Origin: Pelomyxa schiedti
Taxonomy: Eukaryota > Protista > Evosea
DNA length: 64,000 bases
Direction of reading: 5' to 3'
NCBI GenBank assembly: GCA_020536535.1
Contig: JAHLWZ010000199.1
Location: 14,026-78,025, forward strand
Below, piece by piece: positions 44,626 through 54,100 of the stretch (position 1 is the first letter of the stretch; the number at the start of each line of letters is the position of its first letter). The notes beneath the pieces were generated by a model. It was not told the origin of the DNA, searched no databases, and was given only the letters and a program-made list of their open reading frames with translations. The translations under genes were made by a program, and so were the position numbers.

Positions 44626-46777
44626 TCAGTCGACTTCCTCGATCTTGGGACCACCAGTCTTGGTTGCTCCACTGGATGACGACGAAGGTGTTGTTCTGGG
44701 TGATGGGGTGGGTCCTGCTCCTCCAAAGTTGGGCATCTCTCCTCCTGGGAACCCTCCTGGCATTCCACCGGGCATTCCTCCTGGCATCCCTCCGGGCATT
44801 CCGCCGGCTCCACTTGACTGGTACAGCTTGACCATGATAGGTTGCACAACGTCCTCCAGCTGCTTCATGCGGGAGTCATACTCTTCCTTGGTGGCCTGCT
44901 GATTGCTGTCTAGCCATTCAATAGCTTCTTTGCAAGCTTCCTCGAGCTGCAGAAAACGTCGTTAGGGTTATTCCAAGTGAAACGAGTAATAACAAGACAT
45001 ACTTTAGCTTTATCGTCTTCAGGTATCTTGGTGGCAATCTTTTCGTCCTTGATAGAGTTCTTCACTGAGTAGGCGTAGCTCTCCAAGTGATGCTTAGCAT
45101 CAATGCGGCCTTTCTGTTCCTCGTCATCGGCCTTGTATTTCTCGGCATCGTGGAGCATGGAGTCGATTTGCTCTTTTGACAGTCGGCCTTTATCATTTGT
45201 GATAGTGATGTTGTTCTTCCGTCCAGTGGTTTTGTCTTCAGCTGTTACATTGAGAATTCCATTCGCGTCCACATCGAAGGTTACTTCAATCTGTGGCACT
45301 CCCCTTGGTGCCGGTGGAATTCCAGAGAGCTCGAACTTGCCCAGAAGGTTGCAATGCCTTGTCATTGCACGCTCACCTTCATAAACTTGGATCAGCACAC
45401 CAGGTTGGTTATCAGAATAGGTAGAGAAGATCTGGGACTTCTTGGTTGGTACAGTTGTATTCCTTGGGATGAGCGATGTCATAACACCACCAGCAGTCTC
45501 TATGCCCAGCGTAAGGGGTGTCACGTCGAGCAACAGAAGATCCTGCACTTTTGCACCGCCCGCGCCTGTGAGTATGGCAGCTTGGACTGCAGCACCATAT
45601 GCAACGGCTTCGTCTGGGTTGACTGATTTGTTGAGCTCTTTGCCGTTGAAGAAGTCTTGTAGCAATTGTTGCACTTTCGGAATGCGAGTTGATCCTCCCA
45701 CCAAAACAACATCATGGATTGAGCTCTTGTCAAGGCGTGTGTCGCGAAGTACTTTCTCAACTGGATCCAGAGTTGATCGGAACAAGTCGATGTTCAACTC
45801 CTCGAATTTAGCCCTTGTGATCGTCGTGTAATAGTCAACTCCCTCAAATAGCTGGTCAACCTCTATGGACGCCTGGGCTTGCGAAGAAAGGGTTCTCTTA
45901 GCACGCTCGCAGGCAGTTCGCAGCCTCCTCAGAGCTCGAGCATTGCCACTCATGTCCTTGTTGTACCTCCTCTTGAAGTCCTTGGCAAAGAAGTCGACCA
46001 TCCTGTTATCAAAGTCCTCGCCACCGAGATGGGTGTCACCTGATGTTGCCTTGACTTCAAAGACTCCCTCCTCAATGGCCAGCAGAGACACATCAAACGT
46101 GCCGCCGCCCAAGTCGAAGATGAGGATGTTCCTCTCACCACCCTTTTTGTCCAGCCCATACGCAATAGCAGCAGCCGTGGGTTCGTTGATGATCCTGAGA
46201 ACGTTGAGCCCAGCAATAGTGCCGGCGTCTTTAGTGGCCTGCCGCTGAGAGTCGTTGAAATATGCAGGGCATCTGTAAAATTGTTATTAGTCAAATCTGT
46301 CTCTCACAACTGCAACAAAAAAGAGACTTACGTTATAACAGCGTCCTTGACTGGCTTGCCCAAGTAGGATTCAGCAATCTCCTTCATCTTTGTGAGCACC
46401 ATTGACGAGATTTCCTCAGGGGTGAAAGTCTTCGAGTCGCCGCGATACGCCACCTGGATCATGGGCTTGTCGCCCTTGTTGAGCACCTTGAACGGCCAGT
46501 GCTTCATGTCAGACTGCACAGAGGGGTCGCTGAAACGGCGCCCGATGAGCCGCTTGGCGTCAAACACGGTGTTCTCCACGTTCATCGCGATCTGGTTCTT
46601 CGCCGCGTCGCCAATGAGCCTCTCTTGGTCGGTGAATGCGACGTACGACGGCGTGACGCGGTTGCCTTGGTCATTCGCAATGATCTCAACTCGGTCGTTC
46701 TGCCACACGCCGACACAGGAATAAGTGGTGCCAAGATCGATGCCAACTGCCGGTGCTTTGCCTGTTGTTGTTGCCAT
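44626..46777 (-). CDS. HSP70: Cytosolic heat shock protein 70, three exons (46777-46332, 46272-45003, 44946-44626)
   Basis: [56 protein letters not shown] repeats and C-terminal EEVD*; GT-AG introns keep the frame. Confidence 0.98.
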
Positions 46778-47134: not shown

Positions 47135-50100
47135 TTACAAATTGTGAGCGTGGGCAACTATCTCCTCAAAGGCTGGTCTTGCTGTGGGGTCACCATTCCA
47201 GCACACCTCCATCAGTTGTATATATTTCACATAGGATTCTGTTGGTTGGTGGTTTGTTCAGAGGTTAATGTCATTGGGGCACGAGCGGAATGGAGAAGGA
47301 CACACGAGATGTGTTGTCTGGTATTGGCGGTCTTAGCCCTCTAATTATATCTGGAATCAGTTCGGCATCGGTCCGCTGCTCAAATGGGACTTTGCCGGTC
47401 ATAATTTCCCACCTAAATCAAAGAAACGAAAGGGTGTACAAACAGGTAAGCGATTGGTACCTGAATAGAATGCTCAGATACATTACTATTGCAAACGAAT
47501 AGGTGTCAGCTTTTTCGGTGTACATTGACTCGGCTAATACTTCTGGTGCGGCCCAACAAACTAAAAGAGAATCAGAAAAAGAGAAAAAAGCGGCTTCCAT
47601 TTACCGGTCCCACAAACTGTCATAGTTTTGTTTACACTTTTAAATCTACTGAGACCAAAATCGCAAATCTATTGGAAACAGAGGGTGTGACAAGTGAGTG
47701 GTAGAGGTTTTTTTTTACCTTGATATCCCATTTTTTGTTAACCTTTTTTGTTGTTAGGCTTGTATTTAGTTTCTTACTTCTCTGCTTGTTGCAGGGAAGA
47801 GCCTTCATACCAATACATTTGCGCATTTGAGGTCTCTATGGACAATAGCTGGTTTTCCTGTGTGAAGGAATAACATCCCTTGTGCAATAGAACCAATGCA
47901 AAGCTTAATTTGATTCCATGAGAGTTTTTCTCCTTTATCCAGTATGCCCTTTTATTTTATTAGATTTGTGAAACTGTTTGGTTTACAGTACCCTTAAACT
48001 GCCAAGTTCCATAAACTCAGTAATGATACACATATTTGGTGGTTTAATGCAAGCACCCATAAAGAGAATTATACTACTAGTGTAAGTTGCAGACAATAAA
48101 AGTAATGGGAAATACTTAGGGTGCCGCAATTCACTAAATGGGAAAAGTTACTACGGCCAGTGAAGTGGTAGAGACTAACCTCATTAAAGCGATTTCCTTT
48201 AGTTGGTTGTGCCTTTCACTTTCAGAGTCACCTTCCCGCTGATTTAGTAGGCATTTGACAGCAACAGTTTGTCCTCGCCACTTAGCATACCACACCTCTC
48301 CAAAGTTGCCCTTGCCAATAACATGCAACAACTCAATTTCACTCCATTCGACTTGCCATCCCGAGGATTCCCCTGGTATAACCGCACTCTGGGAACTCGT
48401 TTGGCAAAGAAAAGTGGAGTTATAAAATCCAGTTGAATCGAATTCTCTGCAGTTGAGACCAAGAGGGACAAACTATATTGATATAAGTGTAGTGGAGTAA
48501 GGGGGATAGAATAAAACTTGATAAAGTGTCTCGGAGTTAGAAAAACCCCGCAAATTGAATATTCCATAATTCCTGAAATCACCCAAGTCAGCAAGTTCCT
48601 TGTGCTGCTCTGATTTCTCTGCTTTACTCATTTCAAGACATATCTTTTGCATGTCTTCACTCAGAGTGATTTGTCCTCCCTTATGAGATGAGGATTGCAC
48701 AGGTAATAAAAATAATACCTGGGCACAGGAAGATATTCTGGAGGCTTTATTCACGGTAGGCCCGAAGTAATCCATTCTTTCTGAATCACAGTCAGGAGAA
48801 GGGGGATAAAAGACAAGCATACTTGACATTGGGTCCAAGTCGACATCTGGATGCCCATAGTGACATCCCATACGAACTTGTAATCCACAGAAGCCAAGTT
48901 TACCATCTAAAAACATTGAACAGAAGAAAGTTGGGGGTAGTTCCGTACCAATTAGTTGCGGGGCACACAACGGGTTTTCAAGTAAAGCTGCATCCCAAGG
49001 AGCTAATGGTGATTAGTTGAAGAAACCAAATGAAGTGAAAGAAAACCATTCAATAAGGCGATTTGCGCCTCCACACAAAAGCGAAGAGCTTTCAGTGGAT
49101 TTTTAAAGGTCAACATAAACGCATCGCCTTCAGTTTTAGCTTCATAACCATTGTTTTCTCTGTATATTTTTCTGATGATATTGTTGTGCAGTGCAAGTGC
49201 ACGCTTCCTGTGGAATTTGTTTTAAAACAAGGTAATTTCAAAGGGGAGCAACATTATATTAGCCTCCCATTCCCACAGGCTTGTTGAGCCCTTGATATCT
49301 AATACAAGTTTAAGTGAAGCAAACTTCTTTTCACACTTACCCGTAAAGACCAGAGCTACATTGCCGGTTGGTGCTTCAGCATTAGTGAAACTTTGTTCAA
49401 CTTCCTAAAAAGAAGTGAATGTCAGCTTGTAACTAATTATTAATTACAATGAATTGGTTGAGTTGCGAATCCAAGTTTTCCCATTCCTTTAAAATTTGGG
49501 CGAAGCTGGGTCTCATTCTTTTTGGTAAGGTAAGTCCCTGGAGATGAGGTGAAAGAATGATACTCTGGAAGAGAATTCCAGCATGCTTGCATAAGCTTCC
49601 CCACTGGTTCTACAACAGATGGTGGAATAGTCGGTCTGCCGAAAACAGTGAGTGGACATCCCAGGGTGGAAAAGGGTACCTTAAATTTTCAAGAGTCACT
49701 TTGTGTATCACTGTAAAAGGGTTTAAATTTTCATACAAGGGCTCTCGAGTGAAAATCTACAAAAAGTGTTACATTCTAAATTTATCAAATCAAGGAACAA
49801 CCTCCCATAACAATATACCATAGGAGTACACATCCGATTTGGTTGTGTAGGGTGCTTTGTTAAGCACCTCAGGGGCAGCCCACTGCACAGAACTTAGTAC
49901 TCTTTTTGAGCCAGCAACAAATATGGACATCCCGAAATCAGCAACCTAGAAGAAATAAAAAATTTCTAGAAAAGAGAGAAGTAAACTTACTTTACAGTTG
50001 AGTTTGTCATCAATCTGTTGTTTCAGTGTCAGCAACGAATGTTAATTTAGTGTGCAAACCAGTAGATTTCCAGGCTTTAGATCGCAGTGTATAATAACAG

Positions 50101-53033
50101 GATCAAATGTGTGCAAAAAGTTGACTCCTTTTGCCACATCCTTTGCAATGGCGAGCTTGTTTGTGAGGGAAAGGAATTTTCCCCTATCCATAAGAATATC
50201 TGCAAGGGAACCCTCTGACATGTACTCTGAGTATTGTAAGAGTTAAAGACACTAAGTAGGAAGAACAGAGGTACCAGTGACAATATACAAATAATCTTGA
50301 TCAACACCAAACGCCATAAACAGTACAACCTTAGGAAGTTAATCAAATGGAATAAAAATGACTATGCTGATACTTGGGGATGCCGTAGTAGTCTATACTT
50401 AGGTTAAACACCTTTTAAAACAAGTACAGTTTTACCGTAAGATTTCAACTTCCCGTTCAAACTCATCTAACTTGTGTTGCACAGCTTGAGCTTGTATTTG
50501 TTTTATGGCCACCTCTGTTCCACGCCACTCACCTCTAAAAAATATTATTTTTGTGTGGTATATAAGGAGCGTACTTATAGACTGCTCCAAACGATCCAAC
50601 ACCAATCTGTTTCGAGATCGTCAGTTCCTTTGGGTCAATTTTCCATGCATTGAGAGCTGTCTCCGACATTTCATGTATCTTCTTTAAAAGAGTTGGGAAT
50701 TGTCCAAGCAGCATAAAGGAATTGTACTCGGGAGTGCCGGATATATTTTACTCCAAGTAGAATTGTGACCATAAGAATAAGCATGGAAAAGAGGAAGAGT
50801 GCTACAGTCAAACCAATAGCTAAGTCTACAAACGCATTTAGGAAAAAGGAATGAACACTGGTAAACGCATACATGTGTTGTGCTTGCAAGCCACGGGGCC
50901 ACAAGGATAATGTTCATCGATGATTTTTTGTTCCAGATCAGCAGCAGTTACCAATGCTGTCAGAATATCACTGTAGCCAGAAGCCGCCTTACCTATCTCC
51001 TCCATATGGGGCGCCAGAAGATCAACATACTCAGGTAGCCTATTTTAATGAGGATAGCAGAAGGACAGGAGGGCAGAACCTCCAGAAATCTTTTGTGAAA
51101 GGAAATACCAAGCTATATATACTATTGTAGGGCTTGAGGCTTTGAAAAGAAGAACTCATGATAATATCCTAAAGACTTGAGTAATTTTTTTGGGGAATAC
51201 AATTGTGACCTTTCTTGTAGAAAAACCACCTCGTGAAGCCCACTCTTCTTGTACAGGCTTTGACAGAAGCCACGTGAATAGGTCCACTGCTGCTTCTAGG
51301 TTGGGAGACTTTGAATGGACACCAAGTCCCTATTTACCACCTGTGAGGACATGTTGACTCGTGGAAGAGATCCAACCTGTCCCCCAAGAGAAACGTCAAA
51401 GCCAATTGGAAGGGCAGCATAAGACAAATTAGATGAATGAAGGCAGGACAGGGAATCTAGGAAAGATGGTCCGAAGTTGATCTGTTTAGCAGTCAGGACA
51501 AACTTAATGCGACGACGAGAGACCCAAACAGTTCCCATCACTGCAGCACCACTACAAAGGAGCTGAAAAAGATTAAGATGGCCAAGAAAAAAAAGCAGTA
51601 CATACATCCACAACGTCGCCCAGCTGGGCAGATTCACATGGATAGCCAGTGACATTACAGGTAGACATCAATTTGCGCACATACAAAGTCGCATTAACGT
51701 TTTGGGGACTATCCAGAACACCCTTTATCTTGTAGGTACTTTCATCCCAGAGGTCCCCTGTTTTTTTTTTAAGGAAAAAAGAGGGGGGGATGGCGGGACA
51801 CAGACCACCAAATGCCCAGGATATTTGGTTCCAGTTACAAGCAAATTGATCATAACAAATTACTGCATCATGACACCATGCGGCAATGAAGCCAACTGGT
51901 GCCCCCCAAGAGGGATTTGTGTGAAACTGGTGAGCTAGAAAATATATTTCATCCCTAGGTGGTTCTTAAAATTCATTGAACTGTCTTGGTTTCTCACCAT
52001 GACTCTGGGACTGCAAACCCATGCTGTTCAAACAAATCTTTTCGATAAATCAAAGCACCACAATCTCCATTAAAGCCAAAGCCTGTTGCTTTTTAAAAGA
52101 AGGCAACTTACACATAAAGCTACTGTACCGTAATAACTGTTACTCTGAAATCGGGCATAATAATCCAATTTGTAATAATTTTCCTTTTCGGGTTCCACAA
52201 ATTCAGTTACCTGTGCGAGCACATGAGCATGCAACATGGGAAAGCGGGAACCAGTACATCCAAGATATAGCCATTAGTGACCACATCTCCTACCCACTGA
52301 CTATCATACAGTGCTAGGTCAGGCCCACCCCCAACAGCCCACCCATCAGACACGATACTTGAATACCACTAGTTGTTACGCCATCGTTACACCAAGTAAA
52401 AAAATAAAAGTAAATATAATGTTGCATACAGAGCCAACTGGGGGACATTCCTTCACAGTAATTAGAAATGAAGGGAAGGGGAACAAAAGAAGAGAAGAAG
52501 AAGAAGAAGAAGAAAAAAAAAAGATAGAGAGAACCATTGTAACAACTGCACCAGTATACAAGTCATCCAACATCTCCTGCAGGAGGTAGCAAGGTGCCCA
52601 ATCAAACCAAGTCATTGTCAATTGTGGAAGTGTTGCTGCCCCTGCACTCACATTACTCCTATTCCTGCTCTCCTCTGTCCTCCCATAATCCTGCTGTACC
52701 GTGCTCTTAGTCGTGGTGGTGGCCGTCGTCGTTGTCGTTTTCGTTGTACCCCCCGACCCACCATTGCCGTTTCCCACAATTCCCTCGTGGCGGGCGTCCC
52801 GCACGCGCCTTCCCAAACAACTTCGGGGCCACAGCGCGACCAGCACCACAACGACGACCACGACAACCAGCAACGCTGATAGTTGGCTGTGGAGATTTCG
52901 ACGACCACGGCCACCACAACCACCAAACCAAAGCGCACCCAGGCCAGCCGTTTTTGTTTCGTTATTGTTGGTTTCTTTTATTTTGTTTGTTCGGTCTGCC
53001 ACATTTGCTCCAGATGTTACTCGATTCCTGCAT
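47135..53033 (-). CDS. Receptor-type protein: signal/anchor, extracellular family-1 (sugar-type) solute-binding domain, TM helix, TKL kinase, class III adenylate cyclase, second TKL kinase; many exons, start uncertain
   Basis: SBP exons: TWFDWAP, PDLALYDSQWVG, NGDCGALIYRKDLF..PESWDE, SLGGQGLGV..EEWASRGG, TKDFW..PEYVDLL. TM: LAIGLTVALFLFSMLILMVTILLGV. Kinase 1: IGVGSFGAVY, VAIK, HCDLKPGN, DFG. Cyclase: FTDIKGST, KTEGDAFM, DYFGPTVNKASR. Kinase 2: GKGNFGEV, VAVK, HRDLKCAN, DFG, CWNGDPTARP. Confidence 0.8.
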
Positions 53034-53288
53034 ATGGTATGAGGAAACAACCAATTACACGGATGGGTTGGATCGTGCTGCTTCAGTTTGGTGGATGTTC
53101 GGTGTTTTAATTGGAAAAACGTCACCCCCAGGGCTGCAGTAACTGTTACTTCGTATAATTGCGAAGTTGAAAAAGAGAATGTTGTTGCTGTGGTCTGAAC
53201 TTAGGTAACTTTTAAAACCAAAGTACAGTGGGAAGGAATCGTCGTTTTGTTAGTACAAACCGCAGCCGTTATTGTGACTTCACCATTC

Positions 53289-54100
53289 TCAGGAGAGGGT
53301 ATAACCATCTGGGGTTGATGATCCCAGAGGTGACAGGGGAAGCTCCTCTGGTACAGTTTTCCAACCCCTGAGTTTGGTCCAGTAACCATCAACACAGCAG
53401 GTTATAAGTATCACAGTGGTGAGTGCAAGAATAAAAGCACAGAAGAATCCAATGCCAACCAGGGTCACCACAGTCATTCTGGATTCTTGGTCCCAGAAAT
53501 AAAGAATAATGTCAGAGTCTTCAGAGTCAACCCAGCAGTCCCAGGAATCGCCAGGAACCAAATCGGTATCCTCGATCTCACTGCTACACATGTAAGGGTA
53601 GTCACACCAATCCAGCGGAATTCCACAGGTTTGGTATTCAGTAGAACTTGTGTGACCATAAGTTGTGGTCACAGTCGTGGTGCCAGTCCCATTCAGGCCT
53701 TTGGGGGATGTGCAATTATCAACCTAGAGAACTGGTTGTAGGTGTAAAAATTAGTAGTAATAAAAAGAGCCTGACATATGCTGTTATATTACATGTGCAT
53801 TGGAAGTAACAACAAGGGTATGGATCAGAACACTCCTCGTCATTACAACATATAGTGCTCAGTTGATAAGAAATATTCCCCGAACTCACATAACAAGAGG
53901 TTCCGCACCTTTGTAAACGTTTCCAACAATACCCAGAGAGCAAATAGCAAAACAAAAACAAAAACGAAAAAAAAAAGTGACCTGTCAGTGCTTTCTGCCC
54001 ACATAGCTCCCCCATAGCAAACGAGTACAGTGCTTGTAATGAAAAAACCACACGCTCCCACAAACACAACAACTCTTATACCAGTCCACGGTACTGCCAT
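53289..54100 (-). CDS. Small two-TM protein with Cys-rich loop (paralogue of 60136-60799), multi-exon
   Basis: Hydrophobic VVVFVGACGFFITSTVLVCYGG and VVTLVGIGFFCAFILALTTVIL flank CCYFQCTC..CGIPLDWC..CSS..DSWDCWV. Confidence 0.6.

Follow-up and report, generated by a model that had tools for sequence, protein, structure and literature searches.

Introduction

In the amoeba Acanthamoeba castellanii, 67 cyclases carry an extracellular receptor domain, one transmembrane helix and a cyclase placed between two kinases, and the same arrangement was noted in giant viruses (Clarke et al. 2013, PMC4053784). The ectodomains of the Acanthamoeba receptors consist of one or more PstS-like PBP_like_2 domains, usually plus EGF (Clarke 2013, PMC4053784, Additional file 1, section 3.3), their cyclase was assigned to the fungal type, IIId, and control of the enzymes by the receptor part was called conjecture (Clarke 2013, PMC4053784, Additional file 1). 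In Physarum polycephalum, 43 such cyclase kinases were found (Schaap et al. 2015, PMC4758236). Here, we analysed a window of 64,000 nucleotides from Pelomyxa schiedti (GenBank assembly GCA_020536535.1, contig JAHLWZ010000199.1, positions 14,026 to 78,025 of the forward strand), and we describe a gene on its minus strand (53033-47135 of the window, as for all positions below) that joins a bacterial-type solute-binding protein (SBP) domain to a kinase-cyclase-kinase scaffold. To our knowledge, nobody knows what the large amoebal families of such receptors sense. This domain combination had been proposed in an original prediction made from the letters of the sequence, which also stated, correctly, that receptors with this scaffold occur in amoebae and their giant viruses (Clarke 2013, PMC4053784).

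Results

Gene structure and expression of the receptor

We think it probable that this one nuclear gene encodes a type I single-pass receptor, with the SBP sensor outside the cell and a TKL kinase, an adenylate cyclase and a second TKL kinase inside, the ligand and the outputs being putative. Reading the three minus frames from stop to stop gave about 40 short exons with GT..AG introns of mostly 39-69 nucleotides, the exceptions being the introns of 84 and 61 nucleotides that flank a mini-exon of seven residues. A 38-exon model, made from the sequence before the GenBank annotation was compared, runs from 52642 to 47135 in a single frame of 1228 codons with 0 stops, and every intron in it is GT..AG. 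The stop codon lies at 47137-47135. The features are as follows.

53033-47135, minus strand: the whole gene, one intron-rich nuclear gene of Pelomyxa schiedti
53021-53033, minus strand: predicted first coding exon (ATG plus 10 nucleotides), placed at the first ATG past the stop of the upstream gene
53020-52975, minus strand: predicted 46-nucleotide GT..AG intron, which brings the ATG at 53033 into frame with the signal-like segment
52829-52882, minus strand: Val-rich hydrophobic segment LSALLVVVVVVVVLVALW, a predicted signal peptide or signal anchor, then a Thr-rich linker, with the frame open into the SBP exon
50880-52630, minus strand: SBP_bac_1 or CUT1-type solute-binding ectodomain in 12 exons, from profile tiling, Pfam and paralog identity
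52642-52535, 52450-52430 (the 7-residue mini-exon), 52368-52258, 52210-52129, 52088-51998 and 51954-51806, minus strand: ectodomain exons 1-6
51757-51606, 51562-51524, 51481-51377, 51329-51210, 51168-51080 and 51039-50873, minus strand: ectodomain exons 7-12
within exon 52368-52258, minus strand: DSQWVG motif
within exon 52088-51998, minus strand: YRKDLF..PESW motif
across the 51377/51329 junction, minus strand: LGGQG motif, split before its last Gly at an RNA-confirmed junction
across the 51080/51039 junction, minus strand: KDFW..PEY motif, split after its Trp
50728-50825, minus strand: transmembrane exon, with the helix at 50823-50749 and then the basic residues KYIRHSRK
49448-50681, minus strand: kinase 1 of the TKL group, CTR1/Raf-like, 10 exons, with GVGSFG, VAIK, HCDLKPGN, DFG and APE
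48518-49404, minus strand: class III cyclase, 7 exons, with the metal Asp residues in FTDI and GDAF, the Lys of KTEGD, the Asp of DYFG and the Asn and Arg of VNKASR
47135-48472, minus strand: linker and kinase 2, TKL, with HRD (HRDLKCAN), 9 exons including micro-exons of 18 and 24 nucleotides

The gene corresponds to GenBank KAH3765580.1, a product of 1146 residues named just "serine/threonine protein kinase [Pelomyxa schiedti]", and 35 of the 38 model exons match it exactly. KAH3765580.1 contains neither the signal-peptide exons nor the two SBP exons 52088-51998 and 51954-51806 (240 nucleotides, in frame). Since it starts with the ATG at 52615, the Met of MTWFDW, the public model is without a signal peptide. 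For the omitted SBP exons we used a subfamily profile built from nine homologous ectodomains, this gene excluded, and searched one exon at a time. Both score at the expected place (1.8e-8 and 4e-16) and are conserved in the homologues P0130, P0014 and P0023, so the public model is short of about 80 residues of the domain core. Our model corrects it by adding a predicted signal peptide and about 80 sensor residues. A single 166-nucleotide intron after 52535 was dropped for two introns and the mini-exon, a choice with which the GenBank model and a seven-residue gap in the profile tiling agree. The start at 53033, and with it the signal peptide that depends on its 13-nucleotide first exon, is a candidate read from the sequence; a Val-rich signal peptide equivalent to it is found in the paralog P0014, immediately ahead of the homologous QLTMGW.DW..C motif. 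The transmembrane helix reaches a Kyte-Doolittle mean of 2.83 over 19 residues.

RNA contigs, assembled from three single-cell runs of the same study as the genome, showed that the gene is real and expressed. Each feature named in the original prediction lies on the minus strand at the coordinates listed above. In these contigs, 16 introns of the gene are spliced out, all of them GT..AG on the minus strand; they include the ectodomain introns 51605-51563, 51523-51482 and 51376-51330, the kinase-1 intron 50435-50393, and all nine introns bordering the linker and kinase-2 exons. Contigs that share exons extend from the last exon of the cyclase, across the complete kinase 2, as far as the stop codon, and one contig links four SBP exons (51734-51606, 51562-51524, 51481-51377 and the start of 51329). 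Another (X1 record 4) joins the last ectodomain exon (50964-50873) to the transmembrane exon (50825-50728) and to 55 nucleotides of the first kinase-1 exon.

This last contig also bears on a quite different explanation, in which the SBP exons are a separate gene for a secreted protein, or bacterial or symbiont contamination, merely juxtaposed to a kinase-cyclase-kinase gene. No single RNA contig covers the whole gene and Pelomyxa does contain bacterial symbionts (PMC10579272), but the SBP part is interrupted by 11 spliceosomal introns, of which three are spliced out in the RNA contigs, no stop or start codon lies between the SBP and kinase parts, and the same fusion recurs in the paralogs and in a Fabomonas transcript. 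Both the contamination and the two-gene versions were rejected on account of these introns and of the RNA contig that joins the parts, and we give them hardly any probability. That contig speaks against a separate transcription of the SBP and kinase exons, and the single chain of the original prediction is supported by it and by the same architecture in the GenBank product, two paralogs and a Fabomonas open reading frame.

Two further observations were made on splicing. The kinase-2 intron at 47413-47481 (minus strand) shows two donors in the RNA contigs, giving an intron of 69 or 48 nucleotides; the two forms lie 21 nucleotides apart and are both in frame, and the 69-nucleotide form yields the canonical kinase sequence. 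At 50330-50373 (minus strand), an RNA contig extends 9 nucleotides beyond the predicted donor after a 19-nucleotide micro-exon and then runs into adapter, which suggests intron retention or pre-mRNA. As for the neighbouring genes, an intron-containing HSP70 gene lies downstream (44910-46777, minus strand), and upstream (53292-53723, minus strand) lies the C-terminal portion of a single-pass membrane protein of another kind; neither has a link to the receptor.

A CUT1-type solute-binding domain as ectodomain

The original prediction held that short exons reassemble into a complete family-1 solute-binding domain, and all four motifs that it named (DSQWVG, YRKDLF..PESW, LGGQG and KDFW..PEY) were found in place. 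In the exon-by-exon search, exons E01-E11 cover, in order, positions 3-408 of the 412 profile positions (E-values between 4e-16 and 0.02), and the sole gap, at positions 34-40, matches the 7-residue mini-exon. With Pfam SBP_bac_1, the GenBank product reached 32.4 bits (cut-off 26 bits) despite its two missing exons, and the paralogs, whose matches extend over profile positions 43-307, reached 72.9 and 84.6 bits. Single exons matched Pfam SBP_bac_1 weakly and colinearly, with the YRKDLF..PESW exon at positions 112-131 and the GLGVHSKSP exon at positions 280-307. Neither PBP_like_2 nor EGF was found by Pfam in this ectodomain, where SBP_bac_1/SBP_bac_8 was found instead. No permease lies near the receptor gene, the SBP domain being joined to a transmembrane helix and signalling domains instead.

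The ectodomain is 78% identical (291/374) to that of the paralog P0130, for which an AlphaFold2 model was obtained with a predicted local distance difference test score of 94.3 and a predicted template-modelling (TM) score of 0.91. In Foldseek, this model gave TM scores of 0.72-0.80 to maltose, trehalose, sophoro-oligosaccharide and sulfoquinovosyl binders, and in a PDB sequence search the P0014 ectodomain matched the trehalose/maltose-binding protein 1EU8 with an E-value of 5e-19. The predicted SBP family is thus supported by Pfam in this gene and by structural matches of its paralogs. Judged by the fold modelled for P0130, the ectodomain is a complete two-lobed domain of CUT1 type (type II periplasmic-binding fold).

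A 116-residue read-through piece (51953-51606), which consists of two exons and the in-frame intron between them, was also used as a query; Pfam, PDB and protein-atlas searches with it were unhelpful, and its PDB matches to desmoglein were chance, because the intron-derived residues drove them.

Two kinases around a class III cyclase

Behind the transmembrane helix, the kinase and cyclase exons match Pfam both singly and in the GenBank product, in which Guanylate_cyc (5.9e-24) lies between two kinase stretches, as had been predicted; the exons are all in one frame. The best PDB match of kinase 1 is Arabidopsis CTR1 (9e-60), which kinase 2 also matches (2e-58). Kinase 2 is canonical, with the Gly-rich loop, the VAIK Lys, HRD..N, DFG and APE all present. 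Kinase 1 is complete but for the Arg of HRD, which reads HCD (HCDLKPGN) as first noted in the original prediction, so it is of the non-RD kind and no obvious pseudokinase; since Pelomyxa and Mastigamoeba paralogs also have HCD in their kinase 1, it is a lineage trait and no error.

The two kinases also have intron positions and phases in common, including an 8-codon micro-exon before DFG (50014-49991 and 47742-47719), and a micro-exon with the LRHP motif occupies matching places in both (50392-50374 and 48133-48116). Such common positions and phases would be expected of two kinases that arose by an old duplication and had these introns from then on.

The cyclase contains the motifs FTDIKGST, KTEGDAF and DYFGPTVNKASR. 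Its best PDB match is the Trypanosoma brucei receptor adenylate cyclase GRESAG4.3/4.1 (5e-27), with each catalytic residue aligned; the two metal Asp residues, the Lys/Asp specificity pair, the Asn and the Arg are intact in the adenylate pattern, as predicted, and these six positions are invariant across eight kinase-cyclase-kinase cyclase domains. Beyond family members and euglenozoan cyclases, the matches of the cyclase region are mostly fungal LRR-PP2C (Cyr1-type) adenylate cyclases with 40-50% identity.

Homologues and origin of the sensor domain

When the piece 51953-51606 was used as query in an exhaustive phmmer search, 21 proteins were obtained. These include the gene's own product, the Pelomyxa paralog P0014 (SBP_bac_1 at 5.9e-20, then a cyclase between two kinases), transcripts of Fabomonas tropica with SBP plus kinase-cyclase-kinase, of which P0023 encodes everything in one open reading frame, and further matches in Mastigamoeba and Mastigella, along with SBP plus single-kinase proteins and SBP plus 7tm_3 (class C G-protein-coupled receptor) proteins. 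P0130, the third Pelomyxa paralog, was found by a search with the cyclase region. A word-indexed search with the P0014 ectodomain gave only six distant SBPs, and the full-length P0014 query was swamped by kinases. In P0009, P0011, P0016, P0017 (Platysulcus tardus) and P0019, an SBP_bac_1 domain of this subfamily precedes 7tm_3, where an ANF_receptor head would be usual.

Another of the 21 proteins, P0021, is a genuine bacterial lipoprotein; its gene, on a contig of 1.47 Mb, has those of two permeases and two MalK-type ATPases as neighbours. P0021 shares 48% identity with the ectodomains of Fabomonas and Platysulcus and 40% with that of P0130, and the ordinary sugar SBPs P0243, P0244, P0246 and P0247 are 27-29% identical to P0021. 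A genome scan found kin of P0021 in 12 Chloroflexota assemblies (57-88% identity), with the same operon in the one examined; that SBP-1 domains are ABC-transporter components in prokaryotes, as the original prediction had stated, holds for this subfamily too. Directly after P0244, a distant bacterial SBP_bac_1 protein (L001:1472-5751), a HAMP-PAS-GGDEF-EAL protein is found, not permeases.

In a maximum-likelihood tree of 37 domains, whose bacterial sampling was narrow (one pattern scan and one short-query search), all receptor-linked SBPs form one clade (98/98) that lies in a polytomy with Chloroflexota groups; the SBPs of Actinomycetota, Termititenax and the outgroup are more distant. The Archamoebae SBPs form a clade within the receptor-linked one (100/100). 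The tree supports a bacterial origin of the ectodomain from a Chloroflexota-like ABC-transporter binding protein that would have been acquired before Pelomyxa and Mastigamoeba split, and this acquisition was probably a single one. It is old and common to other Archamoebae and other protists. The horizontally acquired sensor of the original prediction therefore stands as regards its bacterial source, but not as an event specific to this gene. A relative in giant viruses was not found when viral contigs were scanned with a kinase exon and with a profile of the eight cyclase domains, a narrow pattern method that says little.

We also put forward, tentatively and as somewhat short of an even chance, a wider scenario in which one Chloroflexota-like sugar-importer SBP was caught once by an early eukaryote, or spread among eukaryotes, and has since served as a general sensor module outside the cell on several chassis, namely kinase-cyclase-kinase (Archamoebae and the ancyromonad Fabomonas), single kinase, and class C G-protein-coupled receptor (the stramenopile Platysulcus and uncultured protists).

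Discussion

Proposed mechanism and alternatives

We infer a mode of action in which the ectodomain is displayed on the cell surface and a di- or oligosaccharide-like ligand would close the SBP domain. Closure may reorient a receptor dimer across the membrane, and this reorientation would control a head-to-tail cyclase homodimer that makes cyclic AMP (cAMP), and also the flanking kinases, which may phosphorylate themselves or other targets (auto- or trans-phosphorylation). The closest analogies for such a mechanism are the natriuretic-peptide receptor guanylyl cyclases and the trypanosome receptor adenylate cyclases. Saccharide binding itself would be a family-level property, proposed by analogy with the nearest solved structures.

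Several points weigh against this account of a saccharide receptor with cAMP and kinase outputs, and they concern the gene model, the enzymes and the ligand. As for the gene model, no contig of the three RNA runs falls within 48677-50392 or 51735-53134; owing to the second gap, it is homology and reading frame that support the 5' end, the predicted signal peptide and the inclusion of both additional SBP exons, and since leaving out these exons (240 nucleotides) keeps the frame, the form in GenBank may exist as an isoform.

As for the enzymes, the cyclase appears to be of adenylate type and both kinases appear intact, activities that are read from their residues alone. The cyclase region of the nearest paralog, P0130 (residues about 700-860), is 67% identical, and in it both metal Asp residues have become Glu, the substrate Asp Thr, the Asn Ile and the Arg Lys, so that P0130 is probably a pseudo-cyclase and cAMP output is not always maintained in the subfamily. 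P0130 retains the SBP and both kinases, and the loss of these five residues beside intact kinases would fit a receptor whose main output is phosphorylation and whose cyclase acts mainly in dimerisation or regulation and makes little or no cAMP in vivo. For the present gene we regard this as improbable: its six catalytic residues are kept, they align with those of a solved adenylate cyclase, and they do not vary in the eight family domains.

As for the ligand, we know of none for any member, bacterial or eukaryotic, of this SBP subfamily, and the Chloroflexota operons contain no adjacent glycoside hydrolase and give no hint of a substrate. The same architecture might then carry an ectodomain that is not a sugar sensor, and that binds another small molecule or acts as a ligand-independent dimerisation or adhesion module. 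SBP_bac_1 is functionally broad, with sulfoquinovosyl-glycerol binders among the structural matches, no glycoside hydrolase beside the Chloroflexota SBPs names the substrate, and among the structural matches listed the P0130 ectodomain has only 15-25% identity to any characterised SBP. However, all 50 of the 50 structural neighbours listed are ABC-transporter binding proteins, and the ligands named there are all sugars, oligosaccharides or sulfo-sugars. Moreover, of the residues defined as invariant or near-invariant over 28 bacterial and eukaryotic members, this ectodomain retains 7 of the 7 mapped invariant and 19 of the 20 near-invariant ones; such retention (26/27) between bacterial transporters and eukaryotic receptors argues for a maintained binding function. 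We consider an ectodomain without sugar sensing unlikely, though less so than the loss of cAMP output, and we keep the direct saccharide receptor as the preferred reading.

Use of the receptor for ligand discovery

If the single-capture scenario is true, the gene would be a member of an undescribed, widespread protist family whose receptors detect carbohydrates directly, and its bacterial homologue could be used to search for the ligand. The gene also documents how a component of bacterial transporters has come to serve as receptor head in eukaryotes, on at least three different signalling chassis. The chief use of this receptor is as a tractable entry point to finding a ligand: since the CUT1 fold class is well understood and easily expressed, and close homologues exist in bacterial transporters, a ligand screen is straightforward. 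A ligand found for this member would be the first for any receptor of this type.

Comparison with known systems

Natriuretic-peptide receptors of the NPR-A type have an ANF_receptor (type I) ectodomain, a pseudokinase and a guanylate-specific (Glu/Cys) cyclase. The Pelomyxa receptor resembles the NPR type and GRESAG4 in having a periplasmic-binding-protein-like ectodomain, a single transmembrane helix and a dimeric class III cyclase. Unlike the NPR type, it has SBP_bac_1, active-looking kinases and the Lys/Asp specificity pair, and the NPR type is an analogue only. GRESAG4 is without a kinase (Clarke 2013 supplement, PMC4053784).

The closest solved folds are those of Thermococcus litoralis 1EU8 (by sequence, with P0014) and Thermotoga maritima MalE3 6DTQ (TM score 0.78, with the P0130 model); identity to them is only 23-24%, so their ligand cannot be transferred. 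The Chloroflexota CUT1 binding lipoproteins (P0021 and loci L006-L017) belong to the same SBP subfamily and have the motifs W-F-x-W-x-P-C, DSQWIGE and YRKD in common with the ectodomains of P0130, Fabomonas and Platysulcus, but they are free lipoproteins beside permeases and ATPases, with no transmembrane or signalling domains and no introns.

In Mastigamoeba balamuthi, the EukProt proteins P0136-P0139, P0164 and P0187 have the same intracellular scaffold, with cyclases 43-51% identical and several with an HCD kinase 1, but their ectodomains are ANF_receptor/Peripla_BP_6, Laminin_G_3, WSC or DUF4215; the Mastigamoeba SBP protein P0002 has kinases and no cyclase. A protein-atlas neighbour of the product, a Discosea cluster with Pkinase and PBP_like_2, is a lead only.

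The cyclase kinases of Acanthamoeba and Physarum share with the Pelomyxa receptor a large ectodomain, one transmembrane helix, a kinase, a fungal-type (IIId) class III cyclase and a second kinase; they also have a signal peptide, for which the Pelomyxa gene offers a candidate. The Acanthamoeba and Pelomyxa ectodomains are both bacterial-type periplasmic binding domains of one Pfam clan. Unlike the Acanthamoeba form, the Pelomyxa ectodomain is a single SBP_bac_1 domain (CUT1 sugar type) with no EGF, and kinase 1 is non-RD (HCD); with no PBP_like_2 or EGF in its ectodomain, the gene counts as a variant of the kinase-cyclase-kinase receptor family. In the literature searched, we found neither receptors of this kind with an SBP_bac_1 ectodomain nor a fusion of SBP_bac_1 with 7tm_3 described. 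The scaffold, and a bacterial binding-protein head on it, are already known, and what is new in the Pelomyxa receptor is only the SBP family of its ectodomain.

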